Sequence record: LR756502.1
Length of the DNA: 64,000 bases
Strand: one strand, 5' to 3'
In this document: positions 3,245-64,000 of the stretch, in pieces
Layout of the letters: each line of letters begins with the position of its first letter
Position numbering within the stretch: position 1 is the stretch's first letter
The notes under the pieces: generated by a model
Database searches by the model: none
Seen by the model: only the letters and a program-made list of their open reading frames with translations
Told to the model about the DNA's origin: nothing
Made by a program: the position numbers and the translations under genes

Positions 3245-3261
3245 TTACATACTTTAGATTT

Positions 3262-7326: not shown

Positions 7327-7596
7327 ATGAGCTCAATGAAAGAAATGGCTATTAAAGATTATATAGCTAATGTAGATTTTAGAGGTGATTGGTCAATATC
7401 TAAAATTAAAGAAGAGATGAGAAAATTCTTAGGAGAAGAACCAGGAATTGACATAATCTATAAAAAGGATGTTATGGTAAATGAGGTTTCTGGTGAGGCT
7501 AAAGAGTTTGTTGGTGTTAGTAAAGTACAAATTATTTTTACTGATACTGATGATAAGTTTAGAAAGATAGAGTTTCTTGTAGGAGATAAAATTTAA
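7327..7596 (+). CDS. hypothetical protein
   Basis: 89 aa ORF in tight operon spacing. Confidence 0.6.
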   Translation: MSSMKEMAIKDYIANVDFRGDWSISKIKEEMRKFLGEEPGIDIIYKKDVMVNEVSGEAKEFVGVSKVQIIFTDTDDKFRKIEFLVGDKI

Positions 7597-7979: not shown

Positions 7980-8373
7980 GTAGATCACTATCAGTCATCT
8001 TACCTTGTTTATCAAAAAATAAGTAGACTTTATCACTAAATCCTGATTTTCTTCTTATTCCCATTCCGTATGATTTTAGAGTTTCTTCAAAATCTAATAT
8101 TTCTTTCTTATCTTTTAATTCATTTTCATAATAGCTTTCTTCATCCAATATATCATCAATATCTTCTATCATCATAATAATACATTTAGATGCTGGATGT
8201 GATGATAAACTACTACCATAGTGGTCATTATCTTTCCAAGAACCATTCCAGATATCAATCTTTAATCCCATATCGGATAGATCTATAGATAAATCTTTTA
8301 ATAATTCAATTTTGGATTGAATCTTACTACCATAAACTTTAGCTTCGTTGAATTCTGACCACTTTTTAATCAT
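7972..8373 (-). CDS. putative internal head protein
   Basis: N-terminus MIKKWSEFNE. Confidence 0.55.
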   Translation of the reverse strand: MIKKWSEFNEAKVYGSKIQSKIELLKDLSIDLSDMGLKIDIWNGSWKDNDHYGSSLSSHPASKCIIMMIEDIDDILDEESYYENELKDKKEILDFEETLKSYGMGIRRKSGFSDKVYLFFDKQGKMTDSDLLK

Positions 8374-9133
8374 AACATAACTTATCCTTTTTGATGTATC
8401 TGTTTGTATGTGAACATAGAGGTTGTAAATTGCTGTGGTGATTGAGATTTATAACATCATCTTCTATAATAGCGGATGATATTGGTATGATGTGATCAAT
8501 GTCCCATCCATAGTTTAGTTCTCCATTATGCTTTCCGTAGTTTTCCCAAGTCATCCAAGGTTCAAATTTTGACTCTAAATATATTCTAAATTCGTTATAT
8601 GAACATCCAAGTATTGTTTGTGTTTTGGTTTTCTTTTTTAGACCTTTTGATTTTATACAATACCTTATATATGTTCTGATATTTTGTGATATTCTATATA
8701 CGGGGTCATTTATCCTTCTCTCCCTCTGCTTTTCGTTTATAACCTCATTATTGTCTTTATTTCTTCTTTTTCTTATGATATTTAGGTTTTCTCTGTTTTC
8801 TATAGCGTATTTTTTATTCCTCATATCCAATTCCTCCTTATTCTCAAGATAATAGTTATGCATGTATCTATATAATTTATCTTTATTATCGATAGCGTAT
8901 CTTCTTTTATATTCCGATACCTTATCTATATTTTCATTATAGTACTCTTTAGATTTATTTAGTAACTCTTCTTTATTTTCTGTATAGTATTTCCTACTAT
9001 ATTCTTTGGATTTATCTTTGTGTGATTTTCTATACTCCTTCTGATATTCGGATATACATGAGTTACATCTATTTGAATTTTCTTTAAATTCAGTGTTCTC
9101 TTTTTTATTTTTACAATTTAAACATTCCTTCAT
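8366..9133 (-). CDS. HNH endonuclease (free-standing, homing-type) with YYxxNKE helical repeats
   Basis: N-terminal CxxC...CxxC; repeats YYTENKE/YYNENID/YYLENKE; WDIDHIIP...NLQPLC..TN HNH core. Confidence 0.8.
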   Translation of the reverse strand: MKECLNCKNKKENTEFKENSNRCNSCISEYQKEYRKSHKDKSKEYSRKYYTENKEELLNKSKEYYNENIDKVSEYKRRYAIDNKDKLYRYMHNYYLENKEELDMRNKKYAIENRENLNIIRKRRNKDNNEVINEKQRERRINDPVYRISQNIRTYIRYCIKSKGLKKKTKTQTILGCSYNEFRIYLESKFEPWMTWENYGKHNGELNYGWDIDHIIPISSAIIEDDVINLNHHSNLQPLCSHTNRYIKKDKLCYD

Positions 9134-10918: not shown

Positions 10919-11134
10919 ATGATTGAGTTGCCAAACGTAAAGGATTTGATGTATCTTATTGAAATCTTTGATAGGAAAAAATTAGCTATATATAGTCAGA
11001 AATATCAAGATGCTGCTAAGTTAAGAGATATAGAGAGGGATTTTCTTAAAAGGTTTGGTATGTCATTTTCATCAACAAGACAAGATATTGTTATCTTGAT
11101 AAGAGAATTAAAATTGAATGATGTAATTGGTTAG
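10919..11134 (+). CDS. UVR-motif mini-protein with a C-terminal RxxKL motif
   Basis: AIYSQKYQDAAKLRDIE (UvrB/C-type coiled coil); ends RELKLNDVIG. Confidence 0.65.
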   Translation: MIELPNVKDLMYLIEIFDRKKLAIYSQKYQDAAKLRDIERDFLKRFGMSFSSTRQDIVILIRELKLNDVIG

Positions 11135-12663
11135 CAGTTATCACAGCTTATCATACCATTACCATTACACTCTTCACAGGTAGTTCTTCCATTTCCATCA
11201 CAATTGTCACATTCAACCTCACCATCACCACCACATTTTGAGCATTTTATTATACCCTCAACACAATAGGGGTTATTACATGATATAGATATTCCATCAT
11301 CTTCAATTTTTCCTGTTCCTTTACACACTGCACATGCCTCCTCACCATCACCACTGCATTTATCACACTCTATTACTTCATTTCCATCACAAACAGAGCA
11401 TATAACATCTCCTCTTCCATCACATTCACCGCACTCATATTCACCATCACCACCACATCTTTCACACTCACCTCCAGAGTACCCGCCATCAGTATCTTCT
11501 AAGGTAAGAGAACCACTACTTCTGCAATTTCCAATCTCACCTTTTTCTGGATTATAGTATTTTAGTGTATCTAAATATGGGTAATTATCATATCTTCTTG
11601 GTTTTAGTTTAACATCTAATTCTATCCTTCTTACACTTCCATCTGGTGCAAATGTATCATTTCCTGTTCCACTTGAGTTTTGATATTTGCAATAGAATCC
11701 ATTCTTTTTAGCATATTGTCTAAATAGTTCAACATCGGAATCTTCGTGTGTGTAGATTCTATCCATGAACATCTTGTCATCATTAAGCTTCCAAACTAAA
11801 GCTCTTCCCCTTATTTTATTTGGACTATCCGGTGATTTGTATATAACTAGGCTAATCTTATCTGGATTTGAACAATAGATGTCAAAGAAATCATCACTTA
11901 CATTAGCCATACAAGATGATCCAAGAGTACCTCTATCAGTACCTTTTTCATATCTTTCATAATCATACCACTCAGCTATACTATATCCATTAACTATTTC
12001 GAAGTTTGAGAATATATCATTTATAGAATCAATTGTTGCTTTGTATTTATTTACAAAATCTTCAATTTCTTTATCCGATATTTCTACCTTTGCTGTGTTT
12101 AATAATGTTCTAACTCCTCTTCCAACTCTTATAATTTGTCTACTTATTTTAAAGAAATCTGAAGGATCTTCTCCACTTCCTAATCTAAGAGCTTCTATGT
12201 TTACTGGGATTGGCTTATATTCTGTATCGTCTGGTATAAATACGACAAATTTCTTTTGACTAACTGGTGATATTACTTCCTTACCAAGGGTACCCATTGT
12301 GCCTATTGGTGGTTCTGTCTCAATTTGCTTTCTCTCTAATTCCAGAGGCTCCCATAGATAATTAAATCTAGAATCAGAGTCTAAGAATTTACCAGTTATT
12401 GAATATCTCCATTTATTTTTGTTATTATCTAATATTTCTTTAACTTTTCTATCTGGAGTGAATGATATTGTATCATTTGCATCACTTATGTCGAAATAGT
12501 TTGATTGAACTGGATAATCTTTATTCTCTATATCTAATAGAGAATCCGATACTGGTCCTCCAATCTTTTTAAGAACCTTTCTAAGCTTTTCAGAGTATTT
12601 AACATCTGATTCAAGAATAAGTTCAAAATTTTCATTTATAAATTCAAAGTACTTCTTCACCAT
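11131..12663 (-). CDS. putative internal head protein with a C-terminal array of CxxCxGxG zinc-finger repeats
   Basis: N-terminus MVKKYFEFINE; central SSCM...GRALVW...MDRIY block; about 10 CxxC units, most followed by xGxG. Confidence 0.7.
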   Translation of the reverse strand: MVKKYFEFINENFELILESDVKYSEKLRKVLKKIGGPVSDSLLDIENKDYPVQSNYFDISDANDTISFTPDRKVKEILDNNKNKWRYSITGKFLDSDSRFNYLWEPLELERKQIETEPPIGTMGTLGKEVISPVSQKKFVVFIPDDTEYKPIPVNIEALRLGSGEDPSDFFKISRQIIRVGRGVRTLLNTAKVEISDKEIEDFVNKYKATIDSINDIFSNFEIVNGYSIAEWYDYERYEKGTDRGTLGSSCMANVSDDFFDIYCSNPDKISLVIYKSPDSPNKIRGRALVWKLNDDKMFMDRIYTHEDSDVELFRQYAKKNGFYCKYQNSSGTGNDTFAPDGSVRRIELDVKLKPRRYDNYPYLDTLKYYNPEKGEIGNCRSSGSLTLEDTDGGYSGGECERCGGDGEYECGECDGRGDVICSVCDGNEVIECDKCSGDGEEACAVCKGTGKIEDDGISISCNNPYCVEGIIKCSKCGGDGEVECDNCDGNGRTTCEECNGNGMISCDNC

Positions 12664-16162: not shown

Positions 16163-16196
16163 AAAAAAGGAGACTAAATTAGTCTCCTTTTTTTTT
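16163..16196. terminator. bidirectional intrinsic terminator
   Basis: AAAAGGAGACT-AAATT-AGTCTCCTTTT with A/T tracts on both sides, between convergent genes. Confidence 0.85.
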
Positions 16197-19373: not shown

Positions 19374-22300
19374 TTATCTTGGGCCGGATGATGGTGGTAA
19401 TATTACAGCTGCTGCCGCATCTATCAATGTAGGTGCATCTGTAGCATCTTCTGTGAATATATTCCAAACGTGACAAGATGATGTACCTGACCAAGACATA
19501 CCTCTAAATAAAATTTGTCTTATATAATCATCTGTTACTTGACCATCTCCAGTCAATGTAAATGATGATCCATACCAGTTACCATTTCTCCAAGTACCAT
19601 TTTCCCAGAACACATTAAATGCGTTCATGTAGTTTGCGACACCATTCTTCCATATCATACCAATTCCTGTTCCAAGTAGGAATTTACCATCATTCCACTT
19701 TGAAATATAAAAATCACTACTATCTAAATTTCCATTTTCCCAATAACAGTTATCATCAAAATTAAATGTTGATTGAGTTGACCCATTTCTCTTCACATAT
19801 GGATTGAAGGAGCTAGCTTTAAATGTTCCAGATGTGAACCTACCATCCAACCAAACAGAGTTTAACATTTCACCAGATGGATGACTAAATGTTCCAGTTG
19901 TCCAAAGTATGTTTTTAAGATTGGCCTTTTTAGTTATCTTTTTCTCTGTAAACGCTCTTTGTAACTCTGTAAATATCTTTTTGTCTTTAACAAATTTATC
20001 TTTAACATCTGTAACTGTTCCGTTTCTCCATAATCCATAGTATGAACTACTGAATGAATCTACGAAATTTGATGGATTTGAACATGTTGTTCCTAAAAGT
20101 GATATTGTTGAGTATGTTCCACTTCCTTCAAACTCACCTGATGTTAGAACACCATTGTTCCAAACTCTTCCTTTGAATTTTCCTCCATTGAACTCTCCTG
20201 TATACCAAGTTGAGTTTGTTAACCCGCTTCCGTTTCCAAATTCACCACCATTAAATATACCATCTGCCCAAGAGTAATCTGTTGAGTATGTTGATGTGCT
20301 CATAGTATATCCATATCCTGATATGAATTTTCCACCATTGAATGTTCCATTTAACCACTTGGCGTTATTTGATTCAAAAGATCCTCCATTGAAGTATCCT
20401 CCATTCCAAATCGATTCAGAGAATTCATCACTACCATCTTCTGTATAGATATTCGCTCCAAATCTACCCGCCTTGAATATTCCATTATTCCAAGTTACTA
20501 ATCTTGGTGGTTTTGATCCAGAGAATATCCAGTCTGTATTTGTTGCAAAAATATTAGCATTTTCTACAATACCATCATTGAATATACCACCATAGAAATT
20601 GGTATCTGTTGATGATATACCAACATCACCTAATACCCCATTACTAAATGTTCCATTAAACCAATCTGATAAGTACATCTTACCGCTCTTAAATGTTCCA
20701 TTTTCCCACCCACTCTTATAAAAACTACCTCCATTAAATGTACCATTTATCCAAGAATATCTATTATTATAGAAGTGACCAACTATATTACCAGATCTCC
20801 AAGATGATTGGAACTTCTCTGATTGATAAGTTATTGCTCCTGTTGATCCACCGCCAGCATTTGACTTATAAAATAATCCATTTTGGAAATTACCATCTTC
20901 CCATCTAGACTCTCTAAATACACCATTTGAGAATGTTTGTCCAAGCCAAGAGGAGTTATAATAAATACCATCTCTCCATGTGTCATTGCCACTTGTTAGA
21001 AAGCTATATACGAATAGACCAGAGTTTATATTATTACCAGTCTTTCTTAATATCATTTCAGTGAACATTAGGTCCTTTATTGCTGGTAAGTCTGTGAAGT
21101 CAATATCCCTATTATCATAAGATTGATTATAAACTACTGAATCTTTCATATATGCTCTTCTGAACATACCAGATTTTATATTTGACTTATTTACTTTTAC
21201 ATTATGTATGTAATTATATCTATTTCTAACTTCAACTCCATCTATTGCTGTTGTGAAATATGATGATGCTGTTAGTGTTGATATAACAGATGATGTTACT
21301 GATATTTCCTCCAAAATAAGTGATCTTGGTGGTAAAATGTCAATAACCTTATATGTGTCAGGTAAAGTTGTTGTATTTGATAGAATATCAACTTGGTCAA
21401 TAGAGTTTAAATACACTATAGATCCAACCTTTATCATATCGTCATCTATTGATACTGGAGATGGCATTGATATTGTCAACTTATTATCACCAATACTTGT
21501 TATTGATATATCATAATCACCTCCATATGTGGATAGATTTGGTATAACATTGTCGTAGTTATGACTTATATTACTTCCACTGTTCCAATCGGATGTCTCG
21601 AATAAACCACTTCTGAAATCAGAGTCTATTATATAAGCATCCGTTGTATCAACAGTTCCATTAGCAACTCCTAAATTATCTATGTGATCTGATGTTGTTA
21701 TAATATCTATTGATGGTAGTTGGTTAGTATTAATTACTACCGATGTGTCACCTGACATTATGTATTCATTCTCTTTTGATGTACTTAGTACTACTGTGTA
21801 CTCAAAAGAGTGTTTACCTGATAAACGATCATCATGATAAACTGCGTCATTTAGTATGAACTTTCTATCAAGAAAGTTTAAAACACTATTGTCGCTAACT
21901 AAAGCTCCTTTTATATAAAACTGATCCTTGTGTCTAAGTCTATTGTAACTATCCTCTGATATATAAAACTTATATGCTATATAGTTTATTGATGTATCTG
22001 ATGAGTCTGGTGTAATAGTCCATTCATCATATGCTAATACCTTCATAATACGGTCACTATTAAACTTTGATCCATAGAATAAAGACTCTATATAGTGTGA
22101 GTTAACAGATTTCGTTCTTATAACTCTAGAATTATTTAACCTAGAATTCTTTATTTCTGATGTTTTAATATCAGCACTTTCGAATGAACAGTTGTTAAAC
22201 TCACCACCTAGAATATTAATATTTAGTGATTGTGTTAGTGATAGTATATATGATTCAACTGTTGAAAATGCTGCTGATTGAGTTCCTAATAAACTATGAA

Positions 22301-61884: not shown

Positions 61885-62043
61885 ATGGAGAAAGGCAGAA
61901 TGGTAACACTGCAAAACCAAGGGACAACTAGATTCGATCGAAAGTCTTTTAAGAAGAGGCAATTAGATCACCAAAAGTAATGTCCCTGGTGCAACAGGGA
62001 AGGTTCTAGACTTCTGACCTAGCATTACAGACGTTCCCTCCAT
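61885..62043 (+). ncRNA. candidate structured ncRNA (family unidentified)
   Basis: GC-richer intergenic island; ATGGAG/CTCCAT closing stem, GCAG/CTGC, GTAATGT/GCATTAC and CCCTG-GTGCAA-CAGGG hairpins; downstream of TATCTTTG (61820-61827). Confidence 0.45.
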
Positions 62044-62063
62044 TTTATTTATATTTAAAGAAA

Positions 62064-62456
62064 ATGACACAGAAAGAGAAAATAGAAAAAGACTACATTG
62101 TTGCTTTCAAGGCAAAGAACACTGTAGCAAAAAACCTTTTATCAGTAGTAAAGGGAGAAATTCAAAATACAGAAAAGAATGTTGGACAAACATCACTTTC
62201 AGATGAGGATGTAAATAAAATATTATCAAAGATATCTAAAAGTCTGAAAGAAACTAATGATGAAGAGTCTAAACAGCAATTAATAATTGTGGATGGATAT
62301 CTTCCTACTCAAATGTCTAAAGAGGAAATTACAAAGAAAGTATCCGAAATTGTAAATTCTGGCATCACTAATATTGGTGGCATAATGAAGGAGTTTGCAT
62401 CATTGCCAGCCGACAAGAAGATGGTGTCTGAGGCTATTAAAGAAATTGTAAAATAA
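62064..62456 (+). CDS. yqeY: GatB/YqeY domain protein
   Basis: A.KAK....NLL..VKGEI...; YLPTQMSKEEI; IGGIMK; ADKKMVS. Confidence 0.88.
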   Translation: MTQKEKIEKDYIVAFKAKNTVAKNLLSVVKGEIQNTEKNVGQTSLSDEDVNKILSKISKSLKETNDEESKQQLIIVDGYLPTQMSKEEITKKVSEIVNSGITNIGGIMKEFASLPADKKMVSEAIKEIVK

Positions 62457-62470
62457 AAAAGAAAAATAGA

Positions 62471-62689
62471 ATGGAAAAAAAACCACTTAAGAATTTTGGA
62501 ATGATTACCGAAAAGGATTTCCTTGGTAAGACACTAGAAGAAGCAACTGAAAAAGCAGTTAATGACGGATACTCAACAAGAGTAACGGAGAGAGATGGTG
62601 ATTCATTTATATTAACAATGGATATTAGAGTGGATAGAATGAATTTCAGAATTAATAAAAATATAGTAATCGGTGTTTATGTTGGTTAA
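62471..62689 (+). CDS. I78/potato-inhibitor-like small protein
   Basis: FLGKT.EEA...RV...TMDIRVDRMNF.I...V.G. Confidence 0.6.
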   Translation: MEKKPLKNFGMITEKDFLGKTLEEATEKAVNDGYSTRVTERDGDSFILTMDIRVDRMNFRINKNIVIGVYVG

Positions 62690-62843
62690 TAATAAGATAC
62701 CAAATTTCTGGAAAATATATCAATCATTAATAGATGAGTGGGTAGCTGATAATAGAGAAATCACTTGTAATGAGGACTATGAAGTAGCTATTTTATATAC
62801 ATTGGAAAGAGTATATGAAATGACAAAAAAAGGAGAAATTTAA
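62679..62843 (+). CDS. 54-aa hypothetical protein (not in the ORF track)
   Basis: Hand translation MLVNNKIPNFWKIYQSLIDEWVADNRE...MTKKGEI*. Confidence 0.45.
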   Translation: MLVNNKIPNFWKIYQSLIDEWVADNREITCNEDYEVAILYTLERVYEMTKKGEI

Positions 62844-62913
62844 AATAAATTTGGTGGAATTAAAACTTTACCATATATTTGTACTAATAATAAAAAAAGG
62901 GACTTAAAAAGTT

Positions 62914-62922
62914 TAATATATA
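62914..62922 (+). promoter_or_regulatory. TAATATATA element heading the tRNA unit
   Basis: Exact motif 7 nt before the ATG at 62930. Confidence 0.6.
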
Positions 62923-62929
62923 AGAAATA

Positions 62930-63016
62930 ATGAGAACAATTAACAAACATAAACATTTTAGTAAATTGAATAAGTGGTTTAGTAACCATCGATTCGAAGC
63001 TAAAGCGTTTTGCTAA
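62930..63016 (+). CDS. 28-aa candidate leader peptide of the tRNA cluster
   Basis: Hand translation MRTINKHKHFSKLNKWFSNHRFEAKAFC*. Confidence 0.5.
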   Translation: MRTINKHKHFSKLNKWFSNHRFEAKAFC

Positions 63017-63050
63017 ATTGTTAATAAACATAAAGGCATAAACTTACTTG

Positions 63051-63087
63051 AACTCTCGAATTGAAAAATTCGAGAGTTTTTTATTTT
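63051..63087 (+). terminator. intrinsic terminator/attenuator upstream of the tRNAs
   Basis: 12-bp stem AACTCTCGAATT-GAAA-AATTCGAGAGTT followed by TTTTATTTT. Confidence 0.85.
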
Positions 63088-63096
63088 AAATTATAT

Positions 63097-63168
63097 GGTG
63101 GTTATCGTCCAAAGGAAGGATGTGTCCCTGTGAAGGACAAGATGTGGTATCGAGATCCATTAACCACC
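63097..63168 (+). tRNA. tRNA-His (GTG)
   Basis: G-1, acceptor GTGGTTA/TAACCAC, anticodon arm TGTCC-CTGTGAA-GGACA, C73. Confidence 0.85.
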
Positions 63169-63173
63169 CAAAA

Positions 63174-63246
63174 GGATCCTAAGCTAACTTGGTAGAAGCG
63201 TATGCCTGAAGAGCATGAGGATTTGGTTCGAAACCAAAAGGATCCA
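63174..63246 (+). tRNA. tRNA-Phe (GAA)
   Basis: Acceptor GGATCCT/AGGATCC, TATGC-CTGAAGA-GCATG, T arm TTTGG-TTCGAAA-CCAAA. Confidence 0.9.
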
Positions 63247-63256
63247 CAAAAAATAT

Positions 63257-63333
63257 GGTGATTGTAGCTCAATTGGTAGAGCGCTTGACTGTGAGTCAAG
63301 AGGTAGTGGGATCGAATCCCACCTTTCACCCCA
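63257..63333 (+). tRNA. tRNA-His (GTG), second copy, CCA encoded
   Basis: CTTGA-CTGTGAG-TCAAG; acceptor GTGATTG/CTTTCAC has two T:T mismatches. Confidence 0.85.
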
Positions 63334-63335
63334 AT

Positions 63336-63407
63336 GGAGGATTAGCTGAGATGGTTTAGCGTCTGGTTGAAGACCAGAAGACCTCGGTTCGATTCCGGGA
63401 TTCTCCA
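63336..63407 (+). tRNA. tRNA-Phe (GAA), second copy
   Basis: GGAGGAT/ATTCTCC, TCTGG-TTGAAGA-CCAGA, TTCGATT T loop. Confidence 0.9.
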
Positions 63408-63416
63408 CAAAAATAT

Positions 63417-63495
63417 ACACTCGCTCATTGGCGTGACCAGTCGGTTCCCCGATAAAGCGTAAGCGTGGTTAAGAGTTCGAATCTCTTCGGGTGTT
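63417..63495 (+). tRNA. aberrant tRNA-like element (anticodon undetermined)
   Basis: Acceptor ACACTCG/CGGGTGT and T arm AAGAG-TTCGAAT-CTCTT are intact; anticodon arm GTCGG-TTCC-CCGAT has a 4-nt loop; long variable region. Confidence 0.55.
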
Positions 63496-63500
63496 CAAAT

Positions 63501-63571
63501 ACGTGATACTGGCAAGGTGTCGGTCAGGTCTCCAAAACCTCGATGGGTGGGTTCAATTCCTACATCACGTG
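63501..63571 (+). tRNA. tRNA-Trp (CCA)
   Basis: ACGTGAT/ATCACGT, AGGT-CTCCAAA-ACCT, GTGGG-TTCAATT-CCTAC. Confidence 0.85.
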
Positions 63572-63589
63572 CTAAAAGAAAGAAAAGAA

Positions 63590-63619
63590 ATGAAAACAAA
63601 ACGAAAATATAAAAGATAA
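63590..63619 (+). other. 9-codon Lys-rich micro-ORF (MKTKRKYKR*) followed by a hairpin
   Basis: AAA at every second codon; hairpin 63620-63645; directly before three tRNA-Lys genes. Confidence 0.35.
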
Positions 63620-63660
63620 CTGCTCACTGGATTTTCCATGGGCAGTATAATATAACACAA

Positions 63661-63746
63661 GTGTCCGTGAGTGAATGGTTGAAACTACCAGTCTTTTAAA
63701 CTGGCTACCGAAAGGTACAATGTGGGTTCGAATCCCACCGGGCACA
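63661..63746 (+). tRNA. tRNA-Lys (TTT) with a long variable arm and type-II-like body
   Basis: GTGTCCG/CGGGCAC, CCAGT-CTTTTAA-ACTGG, V arm TACC-GAAA-GGTA, A73. Confidence 0.85.
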
Positions 63747-63758
63747 CAAACATACAAT

Positions 63759-63847
63759 GTTTCTGTCGCTCAGCGGTCGAGAGCATCGGTCTTTTAAACC
63801 GAAGGATTTATATCCCATCGTGAGTTCAAATCTCACCAGGAACACCA
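63759..63847 (+). tRNA. tRNA-Lys (TTT) with a long variable arm, CCA encoded
   Basis: GTTTCTG/CAGGAAC, TCGGT-CTTTTAA-ACCGA, V arm GGAT-TTAT-ATCC. Confidence 0.88.
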
Positions 63848-63848
63848 A

Positions 63849-63929
63849 GGATCTGTCGCTTAGCGGCTATAGCAACTGGCTCTTAACCAGTCGAGAAATC
63901 AACCGTGGGTTCGAGTCCCACCAGATCCA
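63849..63929 (+). tRNA. tRNA-Lys (CTT) with an extended variable region
   Basis: GGATCTG/CAGATCC, ACTGG-CTCTTAA-CCAGT, 13-nt variable region CGAGAAATCAACC. Confidence 0.88.
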
Positions 63930-63933
63930 CAAA

Positions 63934-64000
63934 ATGATACTATACAGACCAGTAAACGGAAAGGAATTGGATTTGATAATCGAAAGTGGATATACAAAAT
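63934..64000 (+). CDS. CDS start, partial (possibly ADP-ribosylation/crystallin J1-like family)
   Basis: MILYRPVNGKELDLIIESGYTK; only 22 codons visible. Confidence 0.5.
   Translation, partial: MILYRPVNGKELDLIIESGYTK

Follow-up and report, generated by a model that had tools for sequence, protein, structure and literature searches.

The analyzed window is the whole 64,000-nucleotide stretch taken from LR756502.1, a 642-kb freshwater megaphage with a predicted Bacteroidetes host (PMC7162821). Near its end, two promoter-like elements are followed on the (+) strand by a 28-codon ORF, an intrinsic terminator and a tRNA array, with every element where the first-pass annotation had placed it. The ATG ORF at 62930-63016 (28 codons plus stop) encodes MRTINKHKHFSKLNKWFSNHRFEAKAFC, in which Lys (5), Phe (4), His (3) and Trp (1) account for 13 of 28 residues. 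The terminator at 63050-63087 has a 13-bp stem (5' arm 63050/51-63062, 3' arm 63067-63078/79), a GAAA loop (63063-63066) and a T-tract extending to 63087, with a predicted stability of -16.5 kcal/mol. About 10 nt further on, tRNA-His begins (63098-63168), which was missed by ARAGORN at default settings but scored 44.6 bits against Rfam. It is followed by tRNA-Phe at 63174, tRNA-His at 63258, tRNA-Phe at 63336, an aberrant tRNA-like stretch at about 63417-63490 that was not detected as a tRNA, and tRNA-Trp at 63501-63572, which was detected by ARAGORN under relaxed settings. Two tRNA-Lys(UUU) and one tRNA-Lys(CUU), 82-89 nt long, occupy 63661-63930.

Promoter-like elements upstream of the leader ORF

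The first promoter-like element, at 62850-62881, is of the Bacteroidetes type (TTTG, 20 nt, TATATTTG). There are 5 matches in the window against 0.67 expected, and an element of the form T[TA][TA]G-N19-21-TAnnTTTG lies 45-58 nt before the ATG in 55 of 67 distinct upstream regions of homologues. The second, at 62896-62922, consists of AAAGGGAC, a spacer and TTTAATATATA, and ends 7 nt before the ATG; this is the element seen as TAATATATA in the first-pass annotation. The motif TTAATATATA (62913-62922) occurs 7 times in the window against 2.2 expected, each time just upstream of a gene start that looks like the first gene of an operon. In homologues, TAATATAT(A) is present in 58 of 61 distinct upstream regions, and in 53 it ends 5-7 nt before the ATG. 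Promoter function is inferred for both elements, as is a role of the second as a phage-specific promoter giving a leaderless or near-leaderless mRNA. In homologues, the gap between terminator and first tRNA is mostly 8-34 nt, leaving no room for a separate promoter.

Leader composition matches the downstream tRNAs at several clusters

To assess whether the His/Phe/Trp/Lys content of the leader could arise by chance, we compared it with all 269 ATG ORFs of 20-45 codons in the window (mean 16%, sd 7.5%). The leader has the highest content, and is the only ORF that reaches at least 13/28. We then asked whether leader composition tracks tRNA content elsewhere. Six further tRNA clusters of this genome have their own leader ORF plus terminator, as illustrated by MTTSFQQQQQQQ before four tRNA-Gln and SSRSRSS before Arg/Ser. 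In more detail, MKTTIKNTSSRSRSSKS... precedes Arg and Ser tRNAs, ...IETIGYTGYEGAYSE... precedes Glu, Tyr, Glu, Tyr, Glu, ...ISVGVIAIGAG... with three ATA codons precedes Ile(UAU), Gly, Ala, MKTMNLNMNLNTLTVVNNTLCIR... precedes Asn, Leu, Val, Ile, Thr, ...DQDQPD... precedes Pro and Asp, and MTTSFQQQQQQQINRTD precedes Gln x4. For the seven units of this genome, and likewise for seven units in LR745206.1, the true leader-to-cluster pairing is the unique best of 5040 permutations, both by amino acid and by codon. Over 14 leader ORFs from this genome and a relative, cognate triplets make up 40% in frame 0 against 17% and 11% in the other two frames.

Lineages with rearranged arrays provide natural experiments, in that they have correspondingly different leaders. 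Lineages that merge Tyr, Glu, Ile, Gly and Ala into one run carry the leader ...IEAIGYAYEAG..., another lineage has ...ITTGTTTTTKTGKGKPM... before Met, Thr, Lys, Gly, and the 735-kb phage LR756501.1 has ...INLLNSLCLLGIKL... before five tRNA-Leu, together with a diverged HFWK leader.

Homologues of the leader under study were recovered with degenerate DNA patterns, whereas megablast against the phage collection found only the source record and a 95-nt tRNA match in LR745206.1, and blastn found mostly unrelated phage tRNAs. The 89 loci recovered give 63 distinct leader and terminator sequences and 51 distinct peptides. The ORF is open, with its ATG at the same position, in all 87 loci where it could be traced, and every locus with downstream sequence carries His, Phe, Trp and/or Lys tRNAs, in varying order, right after the terminator. 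Because the search pattern fixed the core codons, their conservation among these homologues is not independent evidence. The N-terminal 18 residues are highly conserved, including Ser and Asn codons that are not cognate to the downstream tRNAs, while the C-terminal halves vary freely in sequence and length.

Alternative RNA helices co-vary across homologues

The segment ATTCGA at 62992-62997, or with its preceding G 62991-62997 (region 2), is a short copy of the terminator 3' arm and pairs with the terminator 5' arm at 63056-63062, as the first-pass annotation had proposed. Across the 63 homologues, 98.2% of cells in this antiterminator helix are paired and 5 of 8 pairs are compensatory; 0 of 500 shuffles reach the observed values, and slid controls give 63% or less. 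The terminator helix is 95.3% paired with 9 of 13 pairs compensatory. A third helix, in which region 1 (TTGAAT, 62966-62971) pairs with region 2 (62992-62997), is part of the predicted MFE hairpin; it is 88.9% paired and shows two compensatory pairs, with a covariation score reached by 3 of 500 shuffles; support here is weaker than for the antiterminator. At the tip of this structure, a small inner hairpin (TGGTT/AACCA, 62975-62988) is 85% paired with one-sided changes only, which is weak evidence. Family B co-varies too. It should be noted that the compensatory changes fall into only about four sequence types among related sequences. Complementarity of leader to 5' arm exceeds that of shuffles, with a mean z of -2.1 over 15 units and -3.4 over 63 homologues, although the window's own antiterminator is the weakest of the family (-6.7 kcal/mol, z -1.0, p = 0.16 taken alone); given the stability of the terminator, the switch must be kinetic. 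A second pairing proposed in the first-pass annotation, between the K-W-F codons (62972-62981) and 63039-63049, forms in this copy but has no comparative support, being 66.9% paired against 67.1% in shuffles with no compensatory change, and was rejected.

To model the effect of a translating ribosome, we folded the nascent RNA with a ribosome footprint blocked. The probability of the antiterminator is 0.82-0.99 when the A site is at codons 6-17 (62945-62980), 0.02 without a ribosome, and about 0 from codon 18 to the stop. In this modelled sensing window (K H K H F S K L N K W F), 9 of 12 codons are read by the downstream tRNAs, while four cognate codons lie after it. Across 14 units, cognate codons are enriched in sensing positions (odds ratio 3.0, p = 3e-7). 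The equilibrium model works cleanly for the window copy and for sequence L006, but it gives high antiterminator probability without a ribosome in sequences L002, L025, L046 and L010, and never predicts the chosen antiterminator in units B1 and D1. The simple model therefore does not fit everywhere, and is used here only as supporting evidence.

A proposed leader-peptide attenuator gating a phage tRNA array

Taken together, these sequence analyses support the core interpretation of the first-pass annotation, namely that the locus is a ribosome-mediated (leader-peptide) transcription attenuator that gates a phage tRNA array; we put the probability of this reading at roughly 0.8. In the proposed sequence of events, transcription starts at one of the two promoter-like elements and enters the 28-codon ORF, the translation of which is inferred. 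If His, Phe, Trp and Lys codons are read quickly, the ribosome clears codons 6-17, region 1 pairs with region 2, the terminator forms and RNA polymerase stops about 10 nt before tRNA-His. If instead a ribosome stalls in codons 6-17 for lack of charged tRNA, it masks region 1, region 2 pairs with the terminator 5' arm, the terminator cannot form, and the polymerase reads into tRNA-His, Phe, His, Phe, Trp and on towards the Lys tRNAs. The new tRNAs would relieve the stall and termination would resume, in a negative-feedback, supply-on-demand loop. That termination is regulated, and what triggers it in nature, are likewise inferred, and the suggestion in the first-pass annotation that host anticodon nucleases are the trigger remains speculation. 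If the TAATATATA element is read by a phage polymerase that ignores intrinsic terminators or is not coupled to ribosomes, the device would work only on host-polymerase transcripts.

The Lys tRNAs sit behind a second, 9-codon Lys-rich mini-ORF (MKTKRKYKR, 63590-63619) and a hairpin (63620-63645) that starts directly after its stop codon. The pattern MKTK[LMRQI]KYK[RQ] occurs in 17 distinct sequences from several phage lineages, in which the Arg codon varies synonymously (AGA/CGA/CGC/CGG), and the hairpin is conserved in structure (-13 to -21 kcal/mol) with different sequences in 17 homologues. Attempts to explain it by the same logic failed: the hairpin has no U-tract and starts at the stop codon, so a terminating ribosome would melt it.

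A broader reading, which we regard as probable though somewhat less so, is that these megaphages split their tRNA genes, of which at least 56 were called in the 70 kb of this genome that was read, into amino-acid-specific regulons, each behind its own multi-codon leader-peptide attenuator. The phage would then measure, codon family by codon family, whether the infected cell can still decode its genes, and transcribe only the tRNAs that are short; such a sensor could answer host tRNA depletion or cleavage by defense nucleases. This would be the first case of ribosome-mediated attenuation controlling tRNA genes. If true, phage tRNA arrays are demand-regulated rather than constitutive cargo, which gives a reason why tRNA genes in these genomes are grouped by amino acid. 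It would also make testable the question of why large phages carry so many tRNAs (codon-usage mismatch, host tRNA turnover or escape from tRNA-cleaving defenses), the leaders reporting which codons the phage itself treats as limiting, and would offer compact, naturally diversified, multi-amino-acid sensors for synthetic biology.

Alternative explanations

Of the alternatives, all of which we consider unlikely, the one that survives best is a real attenuator with a different signal or purpose, such as a timing device in which host-polymerase transcripts terminate early and a terminator-resistant phage polymerase reads through late, or a general translation-capacity sensor rather than a sensor of particular tRNAs. 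The stacking of two different promoter-like elements and the weak antiterminator of the window are in its favor. However, a pure timing device needs neither an ORF nor amino-acid-specific codons matched to each cluster, and the co-varying antiterminator implies conditional read-through.

It is also improbable that the unit is an independent small gene making a micropeptide or a small RNA with a function of its own, with the array expressed by constitutive leak-through or from a promoter type not recognized here. The conserved N-terminal residues, including the non-cognate Ser and Asn codons, and the strong terminator are consistent with this view, and the promoter types of the phage polymerase are unknown. 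Nevertheless, it does not explain why seven unrelated leaders each mirror their own tRNA set, why leaders change when arrays are rearranged, or why an internal segment co-varies with the terminator 5' arm; the freely varying C-terminal halves and the short gap to the first tRNA also speak against it.

A translation-independent RNA switch, which would bind tRNA directly as a T-box does or act as a processing or stability element with the ORF incidental, is similarly doubtful. Alternative helices do exist and the leader nucleotides are strongly conserved. On the other hand, a permissive Rfam scan of 62000-64000 at E <= 1 returned only tRNA-clan matches and one weak, unrelated match far below its gathering score (Plastid-ycf2, opposite strand over a tRNA-Lys), with no T-box (RF00230) and no match in the leader region, although the GATTCGAAG segment looks a little like a T-loop. 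Moreover, the enrichment of cognate triplets is specific to the frame set by a conserved ATG, leaders carry many codons for two to seven amino acids rather than one specifier, ORF length varies only in whole codons in the aligned conserved part, and runs such as seven Gln codons are typical of ribosome sensing.

Finally, a chance ORF in AT-rich DNA, which favors Lys and Phe codons, in front of a terminator serving only the upstream genes (ending at 62843) is contradicted by the comparative data: the ORF is conserved, the permutation result was obtained twice, the helices co-vary, and the terminator lies 207 nt after the last upstream ORF with two promoter-like elements and a conserved ORF in between, whereas the same kind of hairpin with a T-tract sits 11-23 nt after ordinary gene ends at 16163, 35720 and 38219.

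Comparison with known systems

Attenuation has been a textbook mechanism for about 50 years, known for amino-acid operons and a few synthetase genes. The leader-peptide attenuators of amino-acid biosynthesis operons (trpL, hisL, pheL, thrL, leuL of Enterobacteria; PMC3082878, PMC4046918) likewise have a short translated ORF rich in regulatory codons, four RNA segments forming mutually exclusive 1:2, 2:3 and 3:4 helices, an antiterminator weaker than the terminator, and an intrinsic terminator directly before the regulated genes; codon runs also occur, with seven Gln here and seven His in hisL. Here, however, the regulated genes are tRNA genes and not enzymes, so the product is the sensed molecule itself. 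Most leaders sense two to seven amino acids at once, and the device is in a phage, repeated at least seven times in one genome, with a predicted Bacteroidetes host and an mRNA that may be leaderless. The pheM leader and pheST attenuator of E. coli appears to apply leader-peptide attenuation to a component of the decoding machinery, but it is cellular, senses a single amino acid and controls a synthetase, so that the output is a protein and not tRNAs. T-box riboswitches gate downstream genes by an antiterminator/terminator choice according to the state of a particular tRNA, but bind uncharged tRNA directly through a specifier codon and a conserved T-box sequence, without translation. In mycobacteria, leaderless poly-Cys short ORFs act as Cys-responsive attenuators (bioRxiv 10.1101/834739); there a short ORF rich in one amino acid, possibly translated from a leaderless mRNA, controls cysteine-related protein genes, in a different phylum, and not tRNAs. 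Large phage tRNA sets, as in T4, T5 and mycobacteriophages, are thought to sustain translation late in infection or under tRNA-targeting defense, compensating for codon-usage mismatch or host tRNA cleavage. We found no description of codon-specific feedback control of such arrays, or of attenuators before phage tRNA genes, in the literature searched, the coverage of which was incomplete.

The element occurs in at least 89 loci in IMG/VR and in freshwater, marine and other metagenomes, and was absent from 185,579 species-representative bacterial and archaeal genomes; no host copy was found. Just past the end of the window, the array is followed by a W/Y-class synthetase-like gene, which may be co-transcribed with it.

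The tRNA leader region and its chance expectation

The region analyzed corresponds exactly to positions 310001-374000 of LR756502.1, a 642,428-bp uncultured phage genome that was assembled from a French freshwater lake (PMC9723777) and that belongs to the group of genomes above 634 kb predicted to replicate in Bacteroidetes (PMC7162821). The window contains no N. All of the elements noted in the first-pass annotation, i.e., an upstream motif, a short ORF, a terminator and a tRNA cluster, are present. The motif TTAATATATA lies at 62913-62922 and is followed by an ATG ORF at 62930-63016 that encodes MRTINKHKHFSKLNKWFSNHRFEAKAFC. Downstream of the ORF, a hairpin with arms at 63050-63062 and 63067-63079 has the loop GAAA and is followed by TTTTATTTT. 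ARAGORN called Phe, His, Phe and three Lys tRNAs; Rfam added the first tRNA-His at 63098-63168, and ARAGORN with relaxed settings added Trp at 63501-63572. Neither tool recognized the tRNA-like stretch at 63417-63490, between tRNA-Phe and tRNA-Trp. The homologous stretch in LR745206.1, a 634-kb relative (7504-7576 of the extract L002), is called tRNA-Trp(CCA) only at relaxed threshold; the window stretch is possibly a decaying or highly unusual tRNA. The gene upstream (62064-62456) is YqeY-like (PF09424), and a short (239 aa) class-I Trp/Tyr-type aminoacyl-tRNA-synthetase-like gene follows directly downstream of the Lys tRNAs, just past the window end (2258-2977 of L001, a stretch of LR756502.1 beyond the window), and is possibly co-transcribed with the array. 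To assess whether the composition of the ORF could arise by chance, we compared it with the 269 ATG ORFs of 20-45 codons found in all six frames of the window. In the leader ORF 13 of 28 residues are H/F/W/K, whereas the mean is 16% (sd 7.5%) and no other ORF reaches 46%.

Leader composition tracks the tRNA content of other clusters

The first-pass annotation had proposed that leader composition should be compared with the tRNA content of other clusters. To do this, we read the record beyond the window end (the stretches L001 and L003), where the tRNA genes continue in groups. Nearly every group is preceded by a short ATG ORF and a strong hairpin with a U-tract, and then the first tRNA within a few nucleotides. 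The leader MKTTIKNTSSRSRSSKSGEVRLYS precedes Arg(ACG), Ser x4 and Arg(UCG); MNRFTNIETIGYTGYEGAYSELLVRPLSML precedes Glu, Tyr, Glu, Tyr and Glu; MKNLHNISVGVIAIGAGSVCLWLNYVS, in which all three Ile codons are ATA, precedes Ile(UAU), Gly x3 and Ala x2; MKTMNLNMNLNTLTVVNNTLCIRP... precedes Asn, Leu, Val, Ile, Thr and Met; ...VVVDQDQPD... precedes Pro and Asp; and MTTSFQQQQQQQINRTD precedes four tRNA-Gln. Unlike the other tRNA groups, a tRNA-Met(CAU) at L001 16780-16911 (LR756502.1 about 388779-388910) sits directly behind a Bacteroidetes-type promoter-like element with no leader ORF or terminator. A 103-nt tRNA-like gene with an apparent insertion lies at L001 16573-16675.

The relative LR745206.1 has the same seven units with diverged sequences. 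When each leader was scored against the amino-acid set of each cluster, the true assignment was the single best of all 5040 permutations in both genomes, and the same holds at codon level with wobble rules. Over 14 leaders from the two genomes, cognate triplets make up 40% of frame 0 but 17% and 11% of the other frames; the frame set by the ATG therefore matters.

Homologous and rearranged units in related phages

A degenerate pattern derived from the leader core found homologues in 17 IMG/VR contigs and 70 metagenome contigs, and none in 185,579 species-representative bacterial and archaeal genomes. The homologues give 51 distinct peptides, in which the ATG always lies 18 nt before the pattern and the ORF is always open, at 28-39 codons. 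They also give 63 distinct leader and terminator sequences, and wherever downstream sequence was available these are followed by His, Phe, Trp and/or Lys tRNAs in varying order and number. Because the pattern fixed the core codons, their conservation is not evidence; the conserved start, the open frame, the whole-codon indels in the aligned conserved part and the tRNA content are evidence. In the array downstream of the leader at 8306-8469 of one 508-kb contig (L019, IMGVR_UViG_3300049793_000366), which contains His, Lys, Trp and Phe tRNAs, ARAGORN also calls a tRNA with anticodon UUA (an ochre-suppressor type).

We further surveyed all 94 fetched loci automatically and without regard to composition, accepting any terminator within 110 nt of a tRNA and taking the longest ATG ORF ending within 55 nt of the stem. 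This survey returned 86 distinct leaders falling into the same families. In lineages where Tyr, Glu, Ile, Gly and Ala tRNAs form one run, the leader reads ...IEAIGYAYEAG... More distant contigs have ...ITTGTTTTTKTGKGKPM... before Met, Thr, Lys and Gly tRNAs. The 735-kb phage LR756501.1 has ...INLLNSLCLLGIKL... before five tRNA-Leu, and a diverged KHSKHF..KWF leader before Trp, His, His, Phe and Lys.

Covariation of the alternative RNA helices

To test for alternative RNA structures, the 63 homologues were aligned and base pairs were counted for each helix. For the terminator (helix 3:4; 63050-63079), 95.3% of cells are paired and 9 of 13 pairs show compensatory change, with 0/500 shuffles reaching the observed values. 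For the antiterminator (helix 2:3), formed by 62991-62997 with 63056-63062, 98.2% of cells are paired and 5 of 8 pairs show compensatory change, again with 0/500 shuffles reaching the observed values. This is the pairing between ATTCGA and the terminator 5' arm that the first-pass annotation had pointed to. Examples of its pair types are G:C 31 with A:U 30, U:A 36 with C:G 26, and C:G 36 with U:A 26, and sliding the partner by one column drops pairing to 63% or less. For the anti-antiterminator (helix 1:2), formed by 62966-62971 with 62992-62997, 88.9% of cells are paired and 2 of 6 pairs show compensatory change, with the covariation score reached by 3/500 shuffles. Conversely, a second pairing suggested in the same annotation, 62972-62981 with 63039-63049, has no support: 66.9% of cells are paired against a shuffled mean of 67.1%, and 0 pairs show compensatory change.

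The antiterminator types are GTTCGG/CCGAAC, AACTTGG/CCAAGTT, ATTCGG/CCGAAT and, in the window, ATTCGA/TCGAAT. These are related sequences and the independent events are few; even so, the same segment tracks two partners and the terminator tracks it. Family B, the Ser/Arg leaders, shows the same behavior, i.e., TCGAAC with GTTCGA, TCGGAT with ATCCGA, and CCTTCGG with GCGAAGGC. Complementarity between the leader and the terminator 5' arm exceeds that of dinucleotide shuffles, with a mean z of -2.1 over 15 units and -3.4 over the 63 homologues, although the window copy is the weakest of the 63 (-6.7 kcal/mol, z -1.0).

Modelled effect of ribosome position

To model where a stalled ribosome would count, the nascent window RNA was folded up to the terminator loop with a ribosome footprint held single-stranded (-15 to +12 around the A-site codon). 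The antiterminator has a probability of 0.02 with no ribosome, 0.82-0.99 with the A site at codons 6-17 (K H K H F S K L N K W F), and about 0 from codon 18 to the stop. Nine of those twelve codons are His, Phe, Trp or Lys. The equilibrium model is not clean for several homologues, and as in the trp operon the terminator is much more stable than the antiterminator, so any switch must be kinetic. Across 14 units, cognate codons are enriched in the modelled sensing positions (odds ratio 3.0, p = 3e-7), with the reservation that orthologues are not independent.

Transcription signals flanking the leader

A Bacteroidetes-type element (TTTG, 20 nt, TATATTTG) lies at 62850-62881, and there are 5 such matches in the window against 0.67 expected. 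The same kind of element lies 45-58 nt before the ATG in 55 of 67 homologue upstream regions. The motif TAATATATA, which had been noted in the first-pass annotation, occurs 7 times in the window against 2.2 expected. Occurrences of TTAATATATA at 3261, 9140(-), 12669(-), 25186, 47956(-), 61749(-) and 62913 are always 5-24 nt upstream of a gene start that looks like the first gene of an operon, and are often preceded by AAAGRGAC. The motif is present in 58 of 61 homologue upstream regions and ends 5-7 nt before the leader ATG in 53 of them. We infer that it is probably a second, phage-type promoter, in some cases giving a leaderless or nearly leaderless mRNA. The gap from the terminator to the first tRNA is mostly 8-34 nt, so read-through is the obvious way into the array. 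Hairpins of the same style end ordinary genes at 16163, 35720 and 38219.

A proposed attenuation mechanism with tRNA genes as the target

On the basis of these sequence analyses, we propose classical ribosome-mediated attenuation with tRNA genes as the target. In this model, fast decoding of the leader lets the 1:2 helix and then the terminator form, whereas a ribosome stalled at codons 6-17 frees region 2 to sequester the terminator 5' arm, and RNA polymerase runs into the tRNA genes, the products of which relieve the stall. The device would respond to any shortage of charged His, Phe, Trp or Lys tRNA and cannot tell tRNA loss from amino-acid starvation; the data do not address whether the natural trigger is codon-usage mismatch, host tRNA decay or a defence nuclease, the last being an example raised in the first-pass annotation. 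The element satisfies every sequence-level criterion of a leader-peptide attenuator, the exception being the nature of the regulated genes. Judged by the Rfam search, it is not a T-box. No report of attenuators before tRNA genes, in phages or cells, was found in the two papers describing these genomes or in the partial literature searched.

A second conserved element and other features of the arrays

Between tRNA-Trp and the Lys tRNAs lies a second conserved element, consisting of a 9-codon Lys-rich ORF, MKTKRKYKR (63590-63619), followed immediately by a strong hairpin without a U-tract (63620-63645), about 15 nt before the first tRNA-Lys. It occurs as MKTK[LMRQI]KYK[RQ] plus a hairpin of varying sequence in 17 distinct sequences from several megaphage lineages, and the Arg codon varies synonymously. 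The element looks translated and Lys-specific, but a terminating ribosome would melt the hairpin, and the simple attenuation logic does not fit. In L006, one of the extracts examined, a homing-endonuclease-like ORF (11890-12432) separates tRNA-Trp from the Lys mini-ORF; similar ORFs are inserted inside tRNA arrays at L001 18180-18805 and L003 about 11000-11560, all three being judged by eye from the sequences and not by a family search.

Many tRNAs of normally short-armed classes are 79-92 nt long (Lys 82-89, Glu 86, Gln 85, Asn up to 92), as at 63661-63930 in the window and at L001 17162-17247 and L003 31131-31215, which suggests long variable arms or insertions. Outside the window, a full-length GOLLD RNA (Rfam RF02032, 275 bits) at L003 42685-43091 (LR756502.1 434685-435091) lies immediately before an odd tRNA-like gene (L003 43101-43174), and a similar arrangement seems present in LR745206.1 (extract L005, about 19650-19900).
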